A DNA stretch of 62,733 bases, the filler included, from Trichosphaerium sp. ATCC 40318 (Eukaryota; Protista; Tubulinea), in assembly GCA_038496445.1 (NCBI GenBank). It is 3 parts of 3 records of this genome, joined end to end, with 100 filler letters (N's around TTAATTAATTAA, not from the genome) between each part and the next. Parts side by side here need not be neighbours in the genome. Positions count along the whole stretch, not along the records: positions 53,536 to 62,733 come from JALMLS010000519.1; 2 more parts are not named here. One strand, 5' to 3'. The notes beneath the pieces are model-generated. The model had not been told where the DNA came from. It searched no databases and was given only the letters and a program-made list of their open reading frames with translations. How positions within the stretch are numbered: position 1 is the first letter of the stretch; every line of letters starts with the position of its first letter. Below, in pieces: positions 1-62,733 of the stretch. A program made the translations under genes and the position numbers.

Positions 1-3000
1 TTGATAACAGTTCGTCAAGCTTGTTTGGTGTATTTGATTTGATAGTCACAGATTTGGTTGTGTACTTTTGTTGGAGATCACCTAGTGCCCTTTCAGCCGC
101 CTTGATATCAGCAGTGCTTCCAACGACAGTCAATTTGACCATGTCACGTTTAGGATTCTTTTTCTTATTGTATGTGTACACTATAGTACGTTCTTTGTTG
201 GTAGTTGTGTTACGCTGTGTCATTTTATTGAAATCAACTTCGTAGTTGTAAGTATACTTTGTTGCTACACCATGAGAGCCGGTGACCATAAAAGGAGCTG
301 TTGGAATTTTCCCAAGTTCCATCCTTGAATGTATTAGCTCGAAAATCAAACGTGGTACTTACTCTTTAAAGTGGTCTTGAATGATTCTGTTTTGCGTTTC
401 GTAATAGTTGACAAATGTACCATCATTTTCTTTCCACTGCCACTGCATTGGATGAAGGAGGTCCGAATACTTCTTAACTGCTTTAGTGAACGCTTCAACC
501 GCCTTTGGGTTTGTGTCAACAAGCCGTATAGTGTCAACCTTGTTGTCAAGCAAATACAAAGTACAAAGTCGGACAATAGTGTCACAACAAAACTCAACAG
601 GGAATAAAGCTTTACCACCACCAAGGGCGAGTATAGACAAAGACTTATATCCGTTGCAACAATCCCTATGTAGTGTTAGTATAGTACTTCTGGTGAGAGT
701 GTACCTCAAAAGTGTATTAATTCTCTCTTCATAAACTAGTTTACTCTGTTCGTTTTTTCTTCTTGGGATTTTAACGCATAAAACCTAAACAGTAGTTTTT
801 AGGAAATTAAGATTATGATCATCTCATATTACATCGTGCCCGAGAACGCCTTTTGCCCACCATGTATTCTCGTTCAGTTTAGATGTTGTTTGCCCTTGTG
901 ATTGATAATCCCGTAAGGTTTCAGATGCTTTGCTTCCTACCGACTGATTAAAAACCCAATCGCACAAAATAGCTACCTGATGCCATAATCTTACAGTCCG
1001 TTGTTTCATCATAAATATCTCCATAGTGTACTTTAAATGGTGTTTTATGATCTTCAGCGCTGTGAGTTTTTTGGTTGATTCTGGGAGTCTTATTCGTAGT
1101 ATCAAACGCAATCACATTGTACTGAGCCTGAAGCTTTTTGAACTCTAATTTGAATGAGATTATTTTAAATAGCTACTAATCACCTTCGTTTTTGTGGAGT
1201 AGTGCTGCAGTGGTAGTAGACATTTCAAAACTCTTCTCTTCAATGTTTAGCTTTTGTGATTTCAATAAACTATACAAAGCAGTTTCGCATCTCTTCAGTC
1301 CTTGTGAGATACCTGTCATGGATATCCAAAAAGGCGCTTAAAAAAAAAATCAACTTTTATCGTTTTAACTGCTAGATTTAAACGCACGTGTTTCAAGAGA
1401 GGACGTCCACTGCACACAATATTCTATTGCAAGCTTATCAATATCAGATTGGGTTTCCCTAAGTAAAAACGCTTCTACAGCTATAAGGTCTCGCTGTATA
1501 GTTTTTACAGATGTTAGAGATTTCATAGCCGCAACTGCTTTGTCTATGCATGATATTAGATATCTCTCTTTTCCTAAAAAGTTGGTACCAACTGGCGGTT
1601 TGCCTAACCCCGCTACTACTATTCCTTGCCGTTTTAAGGTAAGCAAGACACGAGACATCTCTGGGCTGGTCTTATTTAGTTGATCTCTATTATTCAAAAG
1701 TTCCCACATCGCAAATGACTGATTTCGTGATAGTACAACTTCCTTCTCGTAAAACGAATAATCCTGCAGCGTAATAATGGAAACATCAGTTGAATCTCCT
1801 ATAATTTCTATAACCCACGTGTCTAGGCGTTGTTACTATACTATAAGTAATAAACCAGTACCTTTCTTCTCTGTCCTTGTAATGATAAGATTCACTTTTA
1901 AGAATATTTCTTTTTCCATGTACTCAAACTCCTGTAGAAAATGTGAGTTACGCTCTCGCCAGTTATTTTGCATATTAATACCTTTGAAAGTAGTTGCTTG
2001 TGAGTATCATTTAGTGTCTTAATCTCAACAGTATCCACAATGATATCTTTGGTGAACTCATCAATCTTCGTTTTTTTCTCATTTATTTCTTTATCTGTCC
2101 CATGAAGAATCAGATAGTCAATTCCGTATTCTTCGATATCAACATCCGTAAGGTATTCTTCTATAAAAGTAATTTTGTACCCAGCGTAGATAAACTAGAA
2201 AACCTATTAATTAACTCTTAGCTCACAACATACGCACTTTTCTTGTTTGTGTGACTTCTGCAGCTCTTTTTTCCATATACTGTTTAGCGGAATCTACCTC
2301 ACTTTGAGAAAAACCTTGCAGAACTTGTTTTATTGTACCCGTATGAGGTAGTAGTCCATTCCCTGCTGATGCTGGATGAAGCTAAAGTAACTGTCATTTA
2401 GAAGCCGCACAAACGTGCTTACTTTGATTGATGCTATATCGTTCCCAATATCCAAGAATATATGTTGTATACAATCGTTGACATCTTTCTTAAACCCAGA
2501 TACAATCAATTCTCCTTTTGTACTTGTTATAACAACTGAGTACGTTTGTTCAAGCTTTTTTAAGCTACAATCAATAACGTTAGATGTAAACAAGTCAAGG
2601 GTAATGTACTCACTCAAGTGAAGTATCTATTGTACAATCATACTTGATGGTTCCAAATTCCAATTGTTCTGGCAGTTTCTTCAAAAGGTACAATTTGTTG
2701 TGATTTTCGATGTTATAAGAGAGTATCTAACGGAATTTTAATCAGCTATTATGTGTACTACTTACTGTACATCGGTGCGAAGACCCGAAGAGCCATCGTC
2801 TACCAGGCAAGGTAAGAATGAAAGCACATATATTGTCTACATACTTTTCTTCAATATGAAAATCACATGGTTGTGAAGACATCACTTCCTTCGCCTTGAG
2901 TTTAAATACTTGCAATACTTGACTATCCATGTTAACGTAGACACTCGATTTGATAACCACAGTGTTTGTCAATACTTTTGCCACTTTTGAAGCTGCTAAA

Positions 3001-3440
3001 ACCGTCATTAGTTCCTGAGCGACACGCGTTTGAAAATCGCACCTTGTCCGTGCAAAAAGTGAACTATACACCCTTCGTTCTTTGTGTCAATTGATAGTAT
3101 TGTTCCTTGTTTACAGTAAGAATAATAAATCTCCAAAACGTTAACTTACCCATCTTTTCCATTTCTTCTTTGTCGTCGTTGTTTACGATTGTATGCGGAT
3201 ACCGCAAGGCTGAGTTACTTTCAACCTAGCGCAGTTGATTAGATTAATTCAACAAGCGTGTCGTACCAAAAAAATTGGGCTTACTTTATTATCCATTGAA
3301 GCGTTACAAGTGGCGCTAAACAGATAATTTTGCTCGGGTTCGTAGTCAACCAATTTCAAAGAGTCTCTCAGAGATTTTCTTCGAATAGTTGAACAAAGCT
3401 CTTTTCAACGCGTCAGATACTTGTGAAGATACACGCAGAA
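1..3440 (-). CDS. Multi-exon macro-domain + WWE-domain protein (PARP9/14-like architecture); 3' end runs off the window, 5' end approximate
   Basis: ORF 359-709 has a macro-like segment (YKSLSILALGGGKALFP...DTIRLVD) followed by a WWE start (QWQWKENDGTFVNY); exon at about 170-340 gives YEVDFNKMTQRN...RTI (WWE end). Several upstream minus-strand ORFs (824-3071) are separated by short introns. No PARP catalytic domain is visible in the window. Confidence 0.55.
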
Positions 3441-3535
3441 TTTAGTATTGCAAAATAATAACCTTTGTAGATGGTATGAGCGAACAGTTTCCGTGTAGTA
3501 AAAATTTTATTTTTTTTTCCCAGTCATAGTTGTGG

Positions 3536-4716
3536 CTAGCCAGTGTACAAGTATGAATCGATGTCAAATTGAAATGGAGCTACACCACAATTTATAGAGA
3601 AACTACCTTTACAATTAAAAAATCCGAGTATAGGACACCAGTCTGATATACTATCAGCTAGAGGAGGAGCGCTATCTTTACTGAAAGCAATCCCTAATTT
3701 CTTTCCATTTTTTGTAAAAAACACCAACTCGTGCGTTAGATCTATCAAGAGTACATTGAGTGTTGCGATATAGAAAATGATAATTAGTACCTATACATAC
3801 ACCAATAGTGTCATTTGCACCATACCTAGGACCATAATGTTCTCCATGAGCTAATTAAAACGTAAGTAAACCTCACAAGAACCAGAGTTGAAGAGAAGCG
3901 AGTAAAACAAAGATAGAAAAGTACCTTCGTATTTATTGTCTTGAGATCCTGGAAATCTAAATCCATCGTCCCCATGATATCCTACACTAGGAAATACATC
4001 GGGTGTAAACCTTACCAGTAGAGTCAGTAGAGTATAAGCGATATGGCAAGTCAACTTTAAAGCTCAAAAACGAACCATCCTGGCATCATTGGACGGTTAT
4101 CATATCCTGTAGCGTTTGTAAACCCTGCAGCACCAGAACCAACACATACAGAGTGACTAAAACCATAAGTAAATAAATAAAATGTTCATATTATTGCAGT
4201 CATGATACGTACTCATGGACTTGAGCGTTGTAAGGTATCATATTTTCTCCAATCGTTACTGGAAAAAAAACCAATTAATTAACTTGCACCTATAGCCTAC
4301 ATCCAAAATAATTCCTTTTACTAACCTTCATAGTACTTAACAAGTACTTGAGAACCTGGCATACGTCTATATCTTGGTGGTGGACTAATTTGACACGTGT
4401 CAACACGAATTATTTGAGAAAACAAAATAACATGTTTGGTAGCTGCTTCAAGTCAACGTACCCGACAGCTTGTATTGTGAGGTAGTCCATATGTCCTGTA
4501 CCAAGCTCATACCATCGTATACCATTTACATCACTTTTAGTGAAACGTAATTTTTGGTTTGGACCCATCATAGTATGTGGAAGAAATCGTAGAGTCCTAG
4601 CTTGTTCTTGCACTAGAAATAACGTTTGTTTTGGTTGAATTTTTTGATTGCTGTTAAATGGCGTACTTATTGTTGTTAATCGGTATAAGTGCTTCCAACA
4701 AGGCAGTTGACGCGCT
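3536..4716 (-). CDS. SPRY-domain protein (RanBP9/Ssh4-like SPRY), multi-exon
   Basis: Exons translate to YYEVTI, MMPGW, SVGYHGDDG, YGPRYGANDTIGVCID, VFFTKNGKKLGIAF, INCGVAPFQFDI, which are typical SPRY motifs. Start approximate. Confidence 0.8.
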
Positions 4717-53535: not shown

Positions 53536-53582
53536 TGCACGTGATAAGTTTTTTCGTTGTACCTTTAGCCTAAGCTTTCTAG

Positions 53583-55156
53583 GTGGTGTATGGGCTTCAG
53601 GATATTATGTACGATGTAGTTGTAGGAGCAGCCAGGAAGTGCAATCAATAGTTGCCTTGTACAAGTTTCGAGACAATGTTAGGCGACAATTGTAGCTGCA
53701 CTTCCGTGACTACAATTAACTTATACGTTGTTGTAACATTGAATTAGAATGATGGAGGAGAGCTGGTTGATGATGTTATTGAGGCAGTAAGACGAGAAGC
53801 AGAATCTTGTGAGAGCCTTGAAGGATTTCAATTTTGTCACTCTACCTGTGGTGGTACAGGATCAGGTATGATGATACATACAATAACAAAATCAACAAAG
53901 CATACTTTACGTGTACACTTAACTTGACAAAGGGATTGGAACTCTGATTATGAGTAAACTGAAGGAAGAATATTGTGATAAAATGGTTGTTTCCTTCTCC
54001 TCGATGATAGCGCCTGACATGCATCCATCACAAGTTACTGAGGCATATAATGTGTATGCTTGTTAGGGTGTACAACTTGATTTAACATTATTTGCCTTAG
54101 TGTTCTTTCAATACAGCAACTTGCAGAAAACGCTGATTTAGTTGTTTGTTTTGACAATGATGCTTTATTTAAAGTTTGCTCTAGACACATTAACCCAGAA
54201 GATATTAACTTTAAGGATATGAATCACGTCGCAGCTTCTTTAATGAGCAATATCACATGTGGCTTAAGGTTTCCAGGTACACCACATAGTGTAATTATTA
54301 ATTTTGTAAATGCGCTTTTGTAGGTTCAATGAAAACTGGGTTAAGAAGGATTGCAACAAACTTGACACCCTTCCGAAAGCTTCAATTTTGTATAGCGAAT
54401 CATGTATCATTTCCACTATCAAAAATTGGTTCTTTAAAAGTAAATGCTCTACCTCAATTAGTACACGAAGCCTTCCAGGCACGTCAAAACATCATGACAT
54501 TTTGAGTTGAAATGCTAACACCTGTTAGCCACAAAACTCTACGACTTGTTGTGACCCTATACAGGGGAAGTACTTGGCAGCTTATGCTATTTTCAGAGGG
54601 TATGGTTGCTCTTTTAATGCCACTATTTAAGATGTTGTGTAGGAAGACAATAAGTGTTTGTGAAGCAGAAAATCATATTTCAAACTTTCATAAAAAGAAT
54701 AGTAAAACGTTTGTTGAATGGATTCCAGACAACATTACAACATCTCACTGTAGTATAACTAGCCCTGGTATGCTTCTAGTCGTTTATTTATTCCTATCTC
54801 ACCTTCATAAACAAATAGGTGACGCTATGAGCTGTACTTTATTCGGAAACTCAACAGCTATACAAACACTCTTCAAAAAAACAACCAAACACTTTGATGC
54901 TCTTTATAGAAGAAATGCTTTTATACATTGGTACGAGGGTACGTGTTTAACACTTTTCTCTCAACTAAATACCTTGTTTTATTTTGCAATAGATTTTGGT
55001 ATACAAAAAGAAGAATTCAACGAAGCACGAGCAACCTTAAACGATTTAATAAATTACTATCAAATGTATCAAGAAGTAAAGTCACATACCTCACAGGATA
55101 TAGAAGATGAAGCGCATGAATATGATGAAGTTTGTAATACCAAAGAATCACAATAA
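53583..55156 (+). CDS. Divergent beta-tubulin, 5' end lost in the gap
   Basis: [50 protein letters not shown]...[62 protein letters not shown] and an acidic tail. Confidence 0.88.
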
Positions 55157-55405
55157 ACTCATGCTATTGTACAGCCAAGGCGATTTCATCAATAGTCACA
55201 CCAATTTCGAAAAGTTTTGACTTCACGTCGTTTGAGTTCAAAGCTAAATGGTTTGAAGTCAACTTACGTCGATTCATTAACAGTACATGCACGTGCTACA
55301 ACTATACAGACTTTTTTGGCTTTTGTGATTAATATAGCTGTCTTGAAAGTAGCTGGAACTAAGTGCACAGAAATAAAACATCTAAAAATACAAACTCTTT
55401 CGAAA

Positions 55406-57949
55406 GGAAGTGTAAGATTTAAGGCATTTTTTCTAACCGCCAAAAATGCTCTCACCATACTTTATCACGTGTAAAGAAACGATTTGTACCATTTATAGTT
55501 CTCAAATACGTGGCGTTGGAATTGTGAATCTAAAGTGAGCAGTAACGCTAGCTTACGCTATTAAAACGTGTGGAAAGCACATTCAGGTACTTTTGGTCTG
55601 TGTTAAATCAAAAATATGTTAAAAACAAAGTAAAGCCACAATAACAGCCAAAATAGTTATAAGATGGATTGCTTGTGCACTTACAAGTGTAGTACAGATA
55701 TTTATTCATAAAAGTCTATTTTTTCAGTTAACAGATTCAACGTTTCTCTGTCTCCATCGTTGTATCTGATGTGCCATTTTTTTGTACGGGCTATATACCT
55801 TGATATCACACCATCAAAGTATGCCCTTTCCAAAGGCCAATAAACACGGATCTGGCTTCCTACTAAGTTGCGACCCCATGGCAGTGGTGGAGCTTCTTTT
55901 CTTGGTTTTTTGGTGTTTGGAACTCCTTTCAAAGATGTGATGCTACTAAACTTGCGTTTTGCTCCCCTCTGAGTAGACAATTGTTTGTATTCAGGACAAG
56001 TCAAACCAATGAGTACTGCAATGACATGAGCACATGCGCCAACTGTTCTAGCTCCAGCTGGACATGTGCAGTAATGAACAACATCTACAATGTCATTTGT
56101 TGGCAAGTGAAGAAACACAGTGTGTCCCTTTGAGCTTTTTTTCCCTTGAGTAAATCGAGATTTTAAGCCTACTATTTTGTAGACTTCATGAAGCTTTATA
56201 GCGTTTTCAACACTTTGTGTAACATCATAGTACTTTCGCTTCATCACTTTAAAATTGATGGCTCCTTCTTCATTGTGGACATGGTAGGCTTTGGCAAGAT
56301 CTATAGCCATACTCCCCACTGCAAGTTGACGTATATCTATTTGAGAGAAAGTAGGTAGCTTTAAAATATCTGGTTTTATGGTTGTTCATCCAGATCTCAT
56401 TGTGGCGGCTTCATGTAAATAGTTGTTACTTATTCCACTTTTAGCAAATATTGTGTTTTTATCCATCTCATCTGTTGGCTGATCCTTCATGATTGGTTTA
56501 AAAAAACAGTTAGTAAGAGCAGCAAGTACATGGATTAGCTGGTGAAGTAGTGGAATGAGATTGGTGTCTATTGTTGTATAAAATCTTCCATTTTTTTAAC
56601 ATGCCAAAAGCTGCTTCAACTACAAATCTAAATCTTGTAACACATCTACTTTCATTGGCTTGTGATGTGTTTAATTGATCTTCTTGGGCATCTTTTGAAA
56701 CAGGTGTGTGTATTTTAAAGTTAAGTAGTTGCATTTTGTTAAAGCCACGATCACCCATAAACTGATCAAAGGAGCTATCAAATTCATTACTAATATTAAG
56801 TTTGTTATTTGATAATATATTGTCCATCATGTCACCATCTCCATGGTTGCCATCAGAAAAGTACAACTCACTAAAATCCCAAAATTTACAATCTGGACAG
56901 ACAAATCCCATAGATTTAAGAAGATTACGTCCTTTGTATGAAGAGAAACTATGTTTTTGGTGTAAAAAGTAAGATGACTTTTGGCAATAAAAATATGTGC
57001 CATCCAAAATCAATCGTACATAAGGGAATACATCTGCAAACAAAGATGAAGTGTGATCTGCTATAATATCTAACCTTGATTGACGGAGGTGCAAAGGAAC
57101 AAAAGATGTTGTCAAGCTTGTGAGTACATGTTGAAAGTGTGCACCAATTGTTGGTGCTGTAACTCCAAAAAAATCTGCTGCTGCTCGAAAAGACAAGCTC
57201 TGCCGACATATAGTTGTAAATTGAAACATGTGCCTAGGTTTGATTTGAGCAATATTACATACATCTTCTATATTTGAGCGTGTAAGACCAGTGATATGGC
57301 TATGGTGCTGTCAGCTATACTAGTAGCAAAACCATAGGTTCGGATTGACTCAGTTTTTGTTTTTTTTCACATTTGAGATGTCAAGTTAGTTAGCATTTGT
57401 GTTATACACTTTGGCACAGACACTGTCATTGTAGTTGTATCTATCATACTGCCAAGCTCTGTTATCGATTTGGTGCCACAGTTTTTACATAATTTATGAT
57501 TTTTTGAATTGACGAATATGCCACAGATTGAAAATAACTCTACTGTCCTTTTTTGTCCTATACTGATTAATTGCCTTTGTTTTAACCTGTTTTTTCTCCC
57601 TTTCAGGGTTTTACAGGCAATACATTGTATAGTAGTTGCACTGGGGACTGTAAACGACTCTAAAGTAGTATGTGATGCCATTCACGTGGTTTTGTTGTAA
57701 AAACGTGATAAAGAAATTCGTTGAAATAGTAACAATTACTGAATGCAGTAAACTGCATAAAAACCACCTAAACATATATTGCAAGCATAGAATACTATGC
57801 TACAGGTAATATTGGCTTGTGTTGTTATTCTTTTTACAATGCCACGTATTTGAGAACTATAAATGGTACAAATCGTTTCTTTACACGTGATAAAGTATGG
57901 TGAGAGCATTTTTGGCGGTTAGAAAAAATGCCTTAAATCTTACACTTCC
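55406..57949 (-). mobile_element. PIF/Harbinger-ISL2EU-Spy (PHIS)-type DNA transposon, 2544 bp, perfect 109-bp TIRs, flanked by AAA and TTT with no TSD
   Basis: 55406-55514 is the exact reverse complement of 57841-57949; flanks cgAAA | GGAAG...CTTCC | TTTga; internal DDE_Tnp_4-like coding sequence. Confidence 0.9.
55702..57681 (-). pseudogene. Fragmented transposase: Cys-rich N-terminus, HTH, DDE (Harbinger/IS5-like), SWIM finger, Tudor domain
   Basis: ORFs 57367-57681 (CxxC...CxxC), 56510-57229 (LILDGTY, FSSYKGRNLLK, GDRGF, RFVVEAAFGMLK), 55702-56319 (YCTCPAGARTVGACAH; LVGSQIRVYWP...YFDGVI...WHIRYNDGDRETLNL). Frame breaks lie between them. Confidence 0.85.
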
Positions 57950-58029
57950 TTTGACTATTTGTCCATTTATTCAACAGCATCAAAACGTTAATATGTATAT
58001 TGTTTACATGGCGTTTAATGTACAAAGAA

Positions 58030-59337
58030 CTAATTACATTGAGCACCCAATGCAACAACAGCAGCTTTTGTACACTTTGTACCAACAATAAAAACTCTAA
58101 AAGCTCCTTCAAGAGCTGATATCCCTTTGTCTGTCACACGAGAGCACCCCATTAATCTTATTGTATGAACACCCGCAAGAGCCCTTATTCCTCTATCTGT
58201 TATCTTGGTACACTTAACTAAGGATATCTCATGTACACCAGCAAGATGAATAACACCTTCATCTGTGATTTCACTACAATCATTCAAGTGAATAGTATGC
58301 ACTCCTGCAAGTGATTTCAATCCGTTATCAGTTACACCTTTACACCAACTCAAATCTATTTTGTGTACTCCTGATAAACATCCAAGCCATGAGTCTTGTA
58401 TGGTTAAACGCTTCAAAGAGATGGTGTGAATACCAGCAGAAAAGGCTGATATTGAAGCAAGAGTTATTTCTTGACACCCACTCAAGTCGAGTACACTTGC
58501 ACCAACAAGAGGTGTTATATCTTCATCTTTTACAGTCAAATCGGATAAGATGATAGCATTTACACCTGATAGTTGTTTTAAATGTTCAACAGACACAAAG
58601 TCGCATTCAGAAATGTCAATTGTGTGAAGACACATTTCACCTGTTCTGTTTTTAGGTCTAGTCAAGTGTTCAAAACAAGAACCATCAATGCCTAAGCAAC
58701 TAAACATAAGTATTGTGTGAGCTCCAGCAAGTGCTTTTACACCATTGTCAGTAAAGTTGCAAGAGCTGATATTTATAGTATGAACACCAGCAAGACATTT
58801 TAATCCTTCATCTGTGCAACGATAACAACTCGAAATATTTACATTGTAAGCACCTGAAATAGCATCCAATGAATCATCTGTCAAATTACCTATACAGCCT
58901 ATATCTATGGTATGTACGCCTGACAAGAATTGTATACCTTTATCTGTAATACGCTTACATATGTATATATCTATTTCAACAACACCAGCGAGTGCCTGAA
59001 GGCACTTATCAGTCACTGCCAAGCGCCTTATTGATAATTTTTTAACACCCGCCAATGAACTTATTTCCTCGTCTGACGCCTTGTATTTCGTTACTGACAC
59101 AAGAGTATTGTCCAACAGCGATTTTTTCTTGATTAAACGCTTTAAGGACTCCGACGACCTTATATCTATTAAACCGTAACCAACGTGTCTGTGGATAATG
59201 TCATAGAACAGCCAACAAGTCTGAGCGACTGGATAGCGTGTTTTATTCGGAGTGTACTCAAAAATGCTAACAATAAGCTCTGTTGCTATTGTTTCAAGGA
59301 AGCAAGGATTTCTGCCATTATAGTGTACACTAGCCAT
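58030..59337 (-). CDS. Intronless F-box-like + leucine-rich-repeat protein
   Basis: LETIATELIVSIFEY...VAQTCWLFY (F-box-like) followed by many LAGVHTIxLSxCxxITDxG repeats; likely start at MASVHY. Confidence 0.85.
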   Translation of the reverse strand: MASVHYNGRNPCFLETIATELIVSIFEYTPNKTRYPVAQTCWLFYDIIHRHVGYGLIDIRSSESLKRLIKKKSLLDNTLVSVTKYKASDEEISSLAGVKKLSIRRLAVTDKCLQALAGVVEIDIYICKRITDKGIQFLSGVHTIDIGCIGNLTDDSLDAISGAYNVNISSCYRCTDEGLKCLAGVHTINISSCNFTDNGVKALAGAHTILMFSCLGIDGSCFEHLTRPKNRTGEMCLHTIDISECDFVSVEHLKQLSGVNAIILSDLTVKDEDITPLVGASVLDLSGCQEITLASISAFSAGIHTISLKRLTIQDSWLGCLSGVHKIDLSWCKGVTDNGLKSLAGVHTIHLNDCSEITDEGVIHLAGVHEISLVKCTKITDRGIRALAGVHTIRLMGCSRVTDKGISALEGAFRVFIVGTKCTKAAVVALGAQCN

Positions 59338-59666
59338 TACCGCAGAGTAATAATCGGAAAAGTGATTTGTAGGTTGCCTTAGTGAACTAGTTAAGGACAG
59401 GAAACAAGTGCATTTAAACCTAGAGTGGGCGCTCAACTGCAATCTGCTGTCTCATTCAAATACAATTGGCTACACCCGCGAATCAGATGCCAAAAACTAC
59501 AAGACTGTACAAATGTTACCAATCCACATGCTTAATCAACAAGTGCACGTGACTTTTCAAAAATAAGAAAAAAAGTACAGTTTGTTGTTGTTGGTAATTA
59601 ATATTTGATCTCACTAACTACTCCTGGTTTACTATTTTGTTTACAACAAAAATACTGTACGACTTT

Positions 59667-60551
59667 TCACAACACATAGCAAGTACTTCTCAATGAGTTC
59701 ACACATTGGACTGTAACAGCAGTATCATCAAGTGATATTACTGCAACACCTATGAGTGATTTGACACCTTCATCCGTTATGCCTTTACAGTTGGTAAGAA
59801 GAATGGTATGAACACCAGAAAGAGCTTTGAGACCTTCATCTGTAACTGACGTTCCAGAAAGACCAATAGTGTGAACGCCAGCAAGTGCTTTGACACCTTC
59901 ATCTGTTATTGAAGTGCTACTAAGATTAATAGTATGAACCAGCAAGTGTGGATACGTTAGTTACTTGAGTACCAGCGAGGTTTATGCTACAAACTCCAGC
60001 AAGATATTTGACACATTCATTTGTTACTGATGTGCCAGAAAGATCAATGGTATGAACACCAGATAGTGCTTTGACTGGATATGAAAGAGTTACCATCAAT
60101 ACTACTGAACAAGCAACTATTAAAACATCAGGCCACTCTACGACATACCATAGTCAAACTTACAGCTTTTGAAGATTATGATGCTGTTGTCTAACAGTTT
60201 TCTGGTGTTCATGCCATTGATCTTATTGACACTCCCGTAACAGATGAATGTATTAAATCTCTTGCTGGAGTTCAAAAGATTAGACTTGAAAAGTGCATGA
60301 ACATAACTGACAAAGGTATACAAGCTCTCTGTGGCGTTCATACAATCAGTCTTTGTGGCACTTTAATAACAGATATATCCAACAACGTCATGAATGATAG
60401 AAGCAAGAAGAAAGCACGTTTGTGCAGCTGCGAACCGTGCTTTTGTGACGTTTCGTAAAATAATATGCGCTAAAATCTCGACAGGAAGGTCTAAAAGGCT
60501 CGCTGGTGAGGAGGGATGTATTGGAGCTAATTCTACAAGTTCTTTTGACAT
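59667..60551 (-). pseudogene. F-box/LRR paralogue disrupted by an internal inversion (60076-60374), a stop and a frameshift
   Basis: Minus strand: LLDLPVEILAHII...AAQTC (60375-60551) and LRRs (59667-60075). The middle part reads on the plus strand: LDMKELPS...VV*QFSGVHAIDL...LAGVQKI...LCGVHTISLCGTLITD. Confidence 0.8.
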
Positions 60552-60971
60552 TGTGTTGTTATCCCAATCAGCGCCACTCAATGCTATTAAGGTAGAAGCT
60601 TTAAGGAGGTATGATGTTTTGATATTGCAGCCTGTACTTAACATATTGAAATATCCAGACAATGTCGTATGTAGGATTGAAATACTGCTATTTATTGTAT
60701 TGCAGCGCTGAGACTTCTTTTTAAAAGGCCACTCCGATTTGTAGCACGTGACTTGGTCAAATCCGTAGAAATATTCTGTTATTAGTAAGCACATTTATTG
60801 TATAAGTCAACCTAAGGTACGAGGATATCACATACTCCATGGCATACATAATGAAAAAATGGATTTATGTTACTACACTACTATCATGGCTTTGAGTGGA
60901 TAAAGAATTTGACCTTGATGAAAAGATTTAATGGACAAAATAATAAAGCTAGCTATCTGAAAAAGGATTGT

Positions 60972-61790
60972 TTAAAACAATCTTGGCCAAAAGTCTATGC
61001 AAGTCCTACTAGTTTTGCATCCTAGGTGTTTAACCATTCTTTGTGTTATTTGTGTACCAGGACAATAAATATAAGTAAGGCATGTTAAATTAATGACACC
61101 GTTATCTGTGATTTGGTTGCAGTCTTTTAGATCAATTTTTCTAACACCAATAAGACTGTTAACTCCTTTGTCAGATATCAATTTACAACCACAAAGGCTT
61201 ATGCATTTAACACCAACCAAGTATTGTAAACCTTTATCTGTCACAAGTGTATCATCAAGAAATATTGTATGCACCCCAGCAAGTGCTTTTAAAGTACTAT
61301 CGTCAACACAATCTATATCTGAAATATCAATTACTTTTACTCCTGCCAATTGTTTTATCACATCATTTATAACTGACTTACAACCAGCAAAGTCAATATG
61401 CTGTACACCTGCAAAACATGACAGAGTATCACTTTGTAGTTGTATACAATTGTAAAGCTCTATCCAAGGTATACCAGCCAAAAGGTTAAACGTGTTGTTT
61501 GATATTTGAGTGCAGTGGCTGAGACTAATTTTTTTGATGTTCTTTGTGATTTGATTTTGTGTTAACAAATACTTTACTCCTTCATCAGTAATGCCTGTAC
61601 AGCTATCAAATGATATTTCTGACTGGCGAAGAAGAGGACTTCCTGAATAATTCACACAATCTTCACTCGATAAAATTGTGATTCTGCTGGGAACGTTGCA
61701 GGTTTTGGACACTTGATTTTTATCAGGACTGCTCTCTGTTGGTATGCTAGTTTGCTCATCGCAACTCTCTTGGTTTGAACCAGAAGGCAT
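60972..61790 (-). CDS. Intronless leucine-rich-repeat protein (same LAGV repeat type, no F-box seen)
   Basis: 272-aa ORF with CTGITDEGVKYL, LAGVHTIFLDDTLVTDKGL, LVGVKCISLCGCKLISDKG repeats. Confidence 0.8.
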   Translation of the reverse strand: MPSGSNQESCDEQTSIPTESSPDKNQVSKTCNVPSRITILSSEDCVNYSGSPLLRQSEISFDSCTGITDEGVKYLLTQNQITKNIKKISLSHCTQISNNTFNLLAGIPWIELYNCIQLQSDTLSCFAGVQHIDFAGCKSVINDVIKQLAGVKVIDISDIDCVDDSTLKALAGVHTIFLDDTLVTDKGLQYLVGVKCISLCGCKLISDKGVNSLIGVRKIDLKDCNQITDNGVINLTCLTYIYCPGTQITQRMVKHLGCKTSRTCIDFWPRLF

Positions 61791-62733
61791 GACTTTTTCT
61801 GTCTCTGAACGACTTAAATAAAGTGGTGAGAATTTGAATCCATATTTTACTTATTAAAAGGAGCTACATGCTCACAGTGCAACACTGCGATTGTAGTGTG
61901 ACATTTTTTATCACTCTACTGGTCAACTCCGTAATTTTTCGAAAAAAAACGTGTTTGCGGTTTTACACGTGCTCAAAAACCGAAATAAACTTTATTCACT
62001 CATTTTGTAATGCAATTAATGTAAATGTGGTAATCTCAGCGTATTTAACGTTTAGATCACACTAACAAGGTTAACGTACTCATTGGTGCTCTCTTTATTG
62101 CTTTTGAGGGAGCCGGTAATGGGTTTTGAACTCATTTGACAGTGCTAGAATATCTAAACACACGGTAAGGATTAAACAAACTTCATATTATGTGTACCTT
62201 GTAATGGTGCTGGATTTGTGTTTTATTAGTGCTAATTATAGGTCAACTTAGTCATAGATGTTAAGTACACACAGTTTTGCATAAGTTTGTAGGTACCCAG
62301 ATGAAGGGAAATGCGTAAGATTAATTTTTACCCATTAATCTGATTTCAGAAAAAACGTTTAAAAATAATTACTTTGTTTATTTTTAGAACGCTTTTCGGC
62401 ACACAAGCCATGTACTGTAAACTCCAAGCAGGTGAAATATAGATTCGCTAATGAAAGATGAGGAATGGTTAAACACATACGTAGAGAGAGTTATTGGGAG
62501 AAGTTATAGAAAAATGTATTAATGAGTATGGTCGGGAGTAACACATACAAAGTCATTCTGCGAGGTATAGGAATGGGTCGTGGAGGAAACAAGAGAGAAG
62601 ATAACTAGTACTTTCAAGGTTATTAGACCCAAAGCTAAAATCATGGCTCAACGTATTAATTGCATTATATCACTTTATTATACAGAAGATATTGCAAAAA
62701 AGACATAAAGCACAAGTGGTCAATTGGAACTTA

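Follow-up and report, generated by a model that had tools for sequence, protein, structure and literature searches.

The analysed window is a stretch of 62,733 nucleotides from the genome of Trichosphaerium sp. ATCC 40318 (assembly GCA_038496445.1), in which three parts are joined by filler, and all coordinates given below refer to this whole stretch. The piece of interest, at 53536–62733 (JALMLS010000519.1), is AT-rich eukaryotic DNA with 36% G+C, gene-dense and with short introns in its genes. Between a beta-tubulin-like gene, the end of which is at 55156, and F-box-like/leucine-rich repeat (LRR) genes clustered from 58030 onward, it carries a single discrete element at 55406–57949. Judged by its sequence, this element is a mutated, non-autonomous copy of a DNA transposon that moves by cut-and-paste and belongs to the Spy group within the PHIS (PIF/Harbinger-ISL2EU-Spy) superfamily, and its transposase gene ends in a Tudor domain of the RDM15/PDS5C type.

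A repeat search revealed inverted arms of 119 nt at 55403–55521 and 57834–57952 with 98% complementarity. A base-by-base comparison showed that the arms are identical at 109 of 109 nt counting inward from 55406 and 57949, and diverge beyond. These two positions, proposed as the termini in a preliminary description of this DNA, proved to be the real ends of the element, and the three additional nucleotides of each arm are flanking host DNA, AAA at 55403–55405 and TTT at 57950–57952, which together restore an empty site AAATTT. The terminal inverted repeat (TIR) at the 3' end of the gene (55406–55514) begins with 5'-GGAAGTGT and contains a CACGTG box at 55466, while the TIR at the 5' end of the gene occupies 57841–57949 and has its CACGTG box at 57884. 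The two junctions read CGAAA/GGAAG and CTTCC/TTTGAC. No direct repeat of 2–3 bp indicative of a target-site duplication was found in the flanks of 55406–57949, whichever choice of boundary was made. According to base composition, an AAA/TTT flank pair would be expected by chance in about 1 of 1000 insertions. The copy is a recent insertion, yet it is broken.

All coding potential of the element is located on the minus strand; no second open reading frame (ORF) was found, the ORFs on the other strand inside the element being no longer than 65 aa and without a family match. In the N- to C-terminal direction, the gene encodes a CxxC..CxxC finger, a helix-turn-helix (HTH) region, a DDE_Tnp_4 catalytic core, a SWIM-like finger, a lysine-rich linker and a Tudor domain. 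It is split into four blocks by two frameshifts and one in-frame TGA, and the database searches were performed with these four blocks separately rather than with a joined, read-through or consensus protein. In a tblastn search, four intact relatives, each about 600 aa long, tiled positions 57681–55882 as three frame blocks (57681–57340, 57292–56570 and 56583–55882). In these tblastn alignments, the first frameshift (57292–57340) separates the zinc-finger block from the HTH-DDE block, and the second (56570–56583), where the matches of the four intact relatives switch frame, separates the DDE block from the downstream block. The TGA at 56386–56388 breaks the ORF at a position occupied by tryptophan in at least 90% of relatives in an alignment of the element with 12 relatives. 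The ORF listing places the TAA stop codon of the transposase at 55702–55704, followed by a 3' untranslated stretch up to the TIR (55522–55701); on the other side, a 5' untranslated or promoter stretch occupies 57682–57840, where a CACGTG box abuts the ATG.

The N-terminal block (57370–57681), comprising the start codon and the CxxC..CxxC finger, matched relatives with E-values down to 4e-9, and its CxxC pairs are conserved; this finger is also conserved within the metagenomic clade of transposases described below. In front of the DDE core, the HTH region (57008–57310) corresponds in the alignments to the N-terminal, DNA-binding part of the relatives. The DDE_Tnp_4 core (56540–57007) was recognised with an E-value of 2e-18 and retains all of the motifs DGTY, DRGF and VE..FG.LK, which bear the catalytic D, D and E residues in the PHIS superfamily. 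The SWIM-like finger (56008–56124) and the Tudor domain (55705–55878) are encoded in one unbroken stretch of 227 codons and are connected by a basic linker (55879–55965) including KKPRK, which is probably disordered, with a predicted local distance difference test score (pLDDT) below 50 for residues 141–163 of the C-terminal piece, and which may act as a nuclear localisation signal.

Introns were ruled out as an explanation of the frame changes: the ORFs of relatives are uninterrupted, as seen in the metagenomic contig L001, and the frame changes are therefore lesions. A non-standard genetic code, in which TGA would be a sense codon, was also rejected, since TAA is the stop codon both in host genes and in the transposase, and the frameshifts indicate decay. 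Alignment to the intact relatives shows one ancestral frame inside the TIRs, a single ORF of about 659 codons carrying DDE, SWIM and Tudor together. The preliminary description had left it open whether these domains belong to one ORF or two; the answer is one. All three peptides quoted there lie within the minus-strand ORF 55702–56319; what has to be corrected is that the coding region, with its two frameshifts and one TGA, is not open.

The SWIM-like finger has the signature C-T-C-x9-C-A-H and scores 22.5–22.7 bits with the PF04434 model, above the gathering score of 19.6. Its cysteines C106, C108 and C118 (numbered in the C-terminal piece) are conserved in at least 90% of relatives, and the CxC...CxH columns together with the flanking G-R-T-G are near-invariant across the 12 relatives, including a protein of Colletes gigas; just 2 of 13 clade members reach an E-value of 0.01 with PF04434, though the cysteine columns are conserved. 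The finger is thus present inside the TIRs after the DDE domain, as had been proposed, but it is not a carried module, because its conservation across the whole clade, insect proteins included, means that it is native to the transposase and not captured. This finger, a putative zinc binder, is a general, previously unremarked feature of the transposase clade. A SWIM-type CxCxnCxH finger C-terminal to the catalytic DDE domain also occurs in MULE/MuDR transposases and in FHY3/FAR1. The catalytic superfamilies, Mutator and PHIS, are unrelated, so this likeness is architectural only. Neither of the two papers on Spy elements (PMC4122938, PMC11304231) mentions SWIM, Tudor or zinc fingers of the kind found here.

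Relationship to the Spy group

The element had been provisionally described as Harbinger/ISL2EU-like. As this name implies, it has TIRs at both ends and belongs to the DNA transposons of the PHIS superfamily, but Harbinger/ISL2EU is too coarse a label for an element with Spy-type flanks and no duplication. Spy elements are defined by insertion between AAA and TTT without duplication and by terminal GGANNNNG (Han et al. 2014, PMC4122938). This target was confirmed experimentally for the active cgSpy element of Colletes gigas, and TIRs of 5–691 bp have been reported (PMC11304231). The element at 55406–57949 is flanked by AAA and TTT without duplication, and the length of its TIRs falls within this range. 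It begins with GGAAGTGT, in which GGA is present while position 8 is T and not the G of the consensus GGANNNNG. The transposase is of the single-ORF, PHIS-type DDE kind, with no accompanying Myb/SANT or YqaJ ORF. Neither a 3-bp TWA duplication nor a Myb/SANT second ORF, characteristic of PIF/Harbinger, was found in the element, and the same is true of the 2-bp AT duplication, THAP domain and YqaJ exonuclease ORF of ISL2EU. For THAP, the N-terminal block gave no match, and the hits obtained were zinc ribbons with E-values above 0.1.

Relative elements were delimited in two contigs of JGI metagenomes, at 3429–5893 in L001, with an intact 612-aa ORF, and at 116–2230 in L002. Both are flanked as AAA/GG...CC/TTT and have TIRs of 14 nt, which begin with GGCCATGC and GGTCCTGG and have only GG in common with the Spy consensus. 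The window element and both relatives have AAA/TTT flanks; therefore, the Spy target signature is present in three of three elements of the clade, with a chance probability of about 1e-3 for each. In L001, the intact Spy-like relative is nested in a gypsy-like gag-protease-reverse transcriptase ORF (1512–3689), and a chromodomain-bearing ORF is located upstream on the same contig (5–592).

Among named proteins, the nearest are uncharacterised ones of Colletes gigas, of ants and of the rotifer Rotaria; the Colletes gigas protein shows 29% identity over the HTH-DDE region (E-value 5e-24). On a maximum-likelihood tree, the window element forms the deepest branch in a clade of 12 with a support of 100/100. 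The other 11 members of this clade were found only in metagenome and sequencing-run assemblies, and the sister clade consists of insect and Rotaria proteins. Membership in the Spy group is thus suggested by the target site, the architecture and the homology to insect proteins. Like Spy elements, the window element encodes a DDE_Tnp_4-type transposase in a single ORF, has TIRs starting with GG(A), inserts between AAA and TTT without duplication, and has a C-terminal CxCx9CxH finger that is common to the insect proteins. It differs in belonging to a separate, well-supported clade with members from metagenomes and sequencing runs, and in its CxxC..CxxC finger at the N-terminus, zinc fingers being absent from most Spy transposases (PMC4122938). 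Furthermore, Spy elements have been reported from animals only, and none of those described has a C-terminal Tudor domain.

The Tudor domain, its origin and possible role

A phmmer search against PDB sequences returned a sole match, 7de9_A (E-value 2e-12), which extends over 52 columns without gaps at an identity of about 50%. The 7DE9 structure is the Tudor domain of Arabidopsis RDM15/PDS5C bound to a peptide of histone H3 monomethylated at lysine 4 (H3K4me1). When the C-terminal block of 227 residues was modelled with AlphaFold2, the last 58 residues were predicted with pLDDT values of 94–96 and formed a barrel of five strands. Foldseek ranked 7de9_A first, with a TM-score of 0.93 (normalised to 7de9_A) and a root-mean-square deviation of 0.7 Å, and VIA-align, which is independent of Foldseek, gave a Z-score of 11.7 with 58 of 58 residues aligned, the next match having a Z-score of 8.1. 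Over the whole domain, the identity to the RDM15/PDS5C Tudor is about 45–50%, and the predicted fold is within 0.7–1.4 Å.

The ligand contacts of RDM15 were established by structure and mutagenesis by Niu et al. (PMC8184781): the aromatic cage consists of Trp616, Tyr623 and Tyr641; the me1 specificity stems from Asp643 and Asp645, through their coordination of the monomethylammonium protons; and H3R2 is held in place by Glu647 and Gln654. According to the ungapped alignment, W616/Y623/Y641/D643/D645/E647/Q654 correspond to W/F/Y/D/D/E/E in the element, so that five of the seven H3R2/K4me1 contact positions are identical and two are conservatively replaced. The cage (as W, F and Y), both aspartates responsible for monomethyl specificity and the glutamate of the H3R2 pocket are conserved. 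The earlier assignment of this segment to a plant PDS5-type Tudor is borne out, for the PDS5C/RDM15 type, by both sequence and predicted fold, and since all contact positions are kept or conservatively replaced, its structural part is well supported. The comparison was made against RDM15/PDS5C (7DE9), the MSH6 Tudor being named only as a related one; in both of these plant cases, the domain is part of a cohesin cofactor or a mismatch-repair protein, whereas here it is attached to a transposase.

The conserved contact set of RDM15/PDS5C suggests that the Tudor domain most likely docks on nucleosomes with monomethylated H3K4. We consider it probable, with a rough probability of 0.6, that the element is a Spy transposon whose Tudor domain docks on H3K4me1 and biases integration. 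By homology, the CxxC..CxxC finger and the HTH region would bind the ends of the element, i.e., its TIRs, and the DDE_Tnp_4 core would excise the element and integrate it as a blunt insertion between AAA and TTT, leaving the target unduplicated. The SWIM-like finger comes next, as in all relatives, and in this lineage alone the Tudor domain takes the place of the acidic tail. Placed on a flexible basic linker, the latter could dock the transposase or the transpososome onto H3K4me1 nucleosomes, and of the many AAATTT sites, those in chromatin with the mark would then be favoured. Histone binding, its specificity and the effect on integration are inferred, as is the target choice through a histone mark already envisaged in the preliminary description. 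A more far-reaching proposal, that a Spy family, active in a host which is not an animal but probably a protist or an alga, uses an acquired PDS5C/MSH6-type Tudor to steer duplication-free integration to H3K4me1 chromatin, is doubtful.

Several observations weigh against the proposed role. The assignment to the Spy group draws on target-site features and on homology to insect proteins, the tree having been built with the members of the clade and with insect and Rotaria proteins. With the PTM_DIR17_Tudor model (PF21743), the domain reached an E-value of 4.9e-5 and 23.5 bits, below the gathering score of 27.2, but the shortness of this model and the much stronger direct match to the solved chain put this into perspective. 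The positions of Tyr623 and Gln654 are occupied by Phe and Glu, respectively, and the affinity or specificity may therefore differ from that of RDM15. The single insertion site available has no bearing on site preference. Other observations bear on the origin of the Tudor domain, and among them the position of the junction counts in favour of the proposed explanation. After the SWIM-like finger, the relatives have a lysine-rich patch, a short acidic tail and a stop codon; in the element, the lysine-rich patch (KKPRK) is followed by the Tudor domain at the exact place of this acidic tail. None of the 12 aligned relatives has a Tudor domain, which therefore represents a lineage-specific gain.

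An HMMER search with the 205-aa ORF against 1.84 billion cluster representatives also revealed no protein combining SWIM and Tudor among the best 150 of 674 hits. Among these listed matches, those to the Tudor part were multi-Tudor, bromodomain and PDS5 proteins, and those to the SWIM part were transposases without Tudor. The named Tudor neighbours all belong to land plants or the green alga Chloropicon, and the neighbours without a name were found in metagenomes and in MMETSP transcriptomes. Scans with the back-translated SWIM and Tudor peptide found neither a relative nor a second copy of the family in JGI metagenomes, IMG/VR viral contigs or GTDB prokaryote genomes, and five ORFs of the window had no exact match in a collection of 15 billion proteins. 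One candidate relative, P0004, was discarded as a repetitive PKD-domain false positive. Only one copy is thus known, and it is broken. The Tudor codons (55705–55881) have a G+C content at third positions (GC3) of 0.39 versus 0.26–0.33 in the rest of the ORF, which is a weak hint of recent foreign origin.

Given a sole broken copy and relatives without Tudor, this could be a one-off capture in a dead lineage. In such a scenario, a Tudor segment of the host would have been taken up by one lineage through transduplication or aberrant repair, would never have served the transposase, and would be visible today only because the copy is young. The lack of a Tudor domain in the relatives found, the pseudogene state of the copy, the failure to find another copy in the collections scanned and the elevated GC3, if it reflects a foreign or recent origin, are all in line with such an event. 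On the other hand, the GC3 contrast is based on 59 codons only, while the Tudor domain is complete, in frame and joined exactly where the conserved basic patch ends, with all seven ligand-contact positions kept or conservatively replaced. Moreover, the domain lies inside perfect TIRs in a clean Spy-type insertion, and therefore the fused form has transposed at least once. Overall, a one-off capture seems possible but unlikely.

Another explanation is that the Tudor domain is functional without steering integration. It could mimic or compete with host readers of H3K4me1 of the PDS5C/RDM15 kind, involved in silencing or repair, or it could provide chromatin or nuclear retention. The closest solved homologue, RDM15/PDS5C, connects H3K4me1 with the RNA-directed methylation of DNA at transposons (PMC8184781), and the Tudor domains of PDS5 and MSH6 recruit repair, which makes such a role conceivable. 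However, the existence of such a silencing or repair pathway in the host is an assumption, and the precedents of reader domains on integrases and transposases mostly concern tethering, so that we regard a non-steering function as rather improbable. Finally, an ordinary PIF/Harbinger or ISL2EU element with coincidental AAA/TTT flanks, for which one could argue because the Pfam DDE_Tnp_4 model spans the whole superfamily and the tree lacked the respective references, is highly improbable in view of the missing TWA or AT duplication, Myb/SANT or YqaJ ORF and THAP domain, the shared target signature of the three clade elements, and the nearest named proteins from Colletes gigas, the source of an active Spy, ants and Rotaria. 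A Spy element with a Tudor domain directed to H3K4me1 is our preferred explanation.

Neighbouring genes and the CACGTG palindrome

The beta-tubulin-like gene on one side of the element (53536–55156, plus strand) is divergent, has many introns of 45–75 nt and is cut by the edge of the piece. Beta-tubulins are its best PDB matches, with an E-value of only 1e-19 over the C-terminal third, and no relatives were retrieved by a word search. On the other side, paralogous LRR genes form a cluster on the minus strand (58030–59337, 59667–60099, 60363–60794 and 60972–61790), with an inverted fragment at 60297–60458 on the plus strand. Some of these genes have an F-box-like N-terminal stretch, and some are fragmented or frame-broken. 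In a word search, the best relatives of a 435-aa LRR protein were only 32–36% identical and came from MMETSP and metagenomes. A search of the ESM Atlas yielded weak leads, with a score of 0.79, to clusters of Rotifera and Mollusca, and Rfam returned no match.

The palindrome CACGTG occurs eight times in the piece, at 53538, 55290, 55466, 57683, 57884, 59546, 60745 and 61966, while about one occurrence is expected and the maximum in 500 shuffles was four. It is located about 50–200 nt upstream of the start of each LRR gene, once in each TIR and once adjoining the ATG of the transposase. CACGTG may be a promoter box of the host that is also present on the element.

Comparison with other elements carrying chromatin readers

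Full-text literature searches found no paper describing a DNA transposase together with a Tudor domain. Gypsy-10_Ec32 of Ectocarpus, described in a 2025 survey (PMC12477816), was, to the knowledge of its authors, the first reported transposable element with a Tudor domain. It resembles the window element in having a C-terminal Tudor on the integration enzyme, and differs in that this enzyme is the integrase of a long terminal repeat (LTR) retrotransposon in a brown alga, whereas here it is a class 2 DDE transposase. The fusions of transposable elements catalogued by Grau-Bove et al. (10.1101/2021.11.30.470311) mainly involve Chromo and PHD readers.

The chromoviruses and MAGGY, with their Ty3/gypsy integrases, as well as hAT and other Chromo or PHD fusions, share with the window element a C-terminal methyl-lysine reader of the Royal family and the proposed logic of tethering. 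In contrast to chromodomain integrases and Chromo- or PHD-bearing DNA transposons, the reader here is a Tudor domain and the transposase superfamily is distinct. The mark is also different: H3K4me1, associated with active genes or enhancers, is predicted here, versus heterochromatic H3K9me for chromodomain elements.

For LTR retrotransposons, there is ample documentation of tethering through reader domains, in most cases chromodomains that direct the elements to heterochromatin; for DNA transposons, it is sporadic and concerns Chromo and PHD readers. A Tudor domain of the H3K4me1 type would aim a cut-and-paste element at active-gene or enhancer chromatin, not at silent DNA, which would be a different ecological strategy. 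Since no duplication is left by Spy transposases, these enzymes are already under development as tools for gene transfer, and a natural fusion of a Spy transposase with a reader shows that the transposase C-terminus tolerates a chromatin-targeting module. If the more far-reaching proposal of an active, Tudor-steered Spy family in a non-animal host is true, this would be, on the literature searched, the first DNA transposon with a Tudor reader. No Spy lineage would have been known outside animals before, and the enzyme would be a natural example of a transposase fused to a reader of a euchromatin mark.

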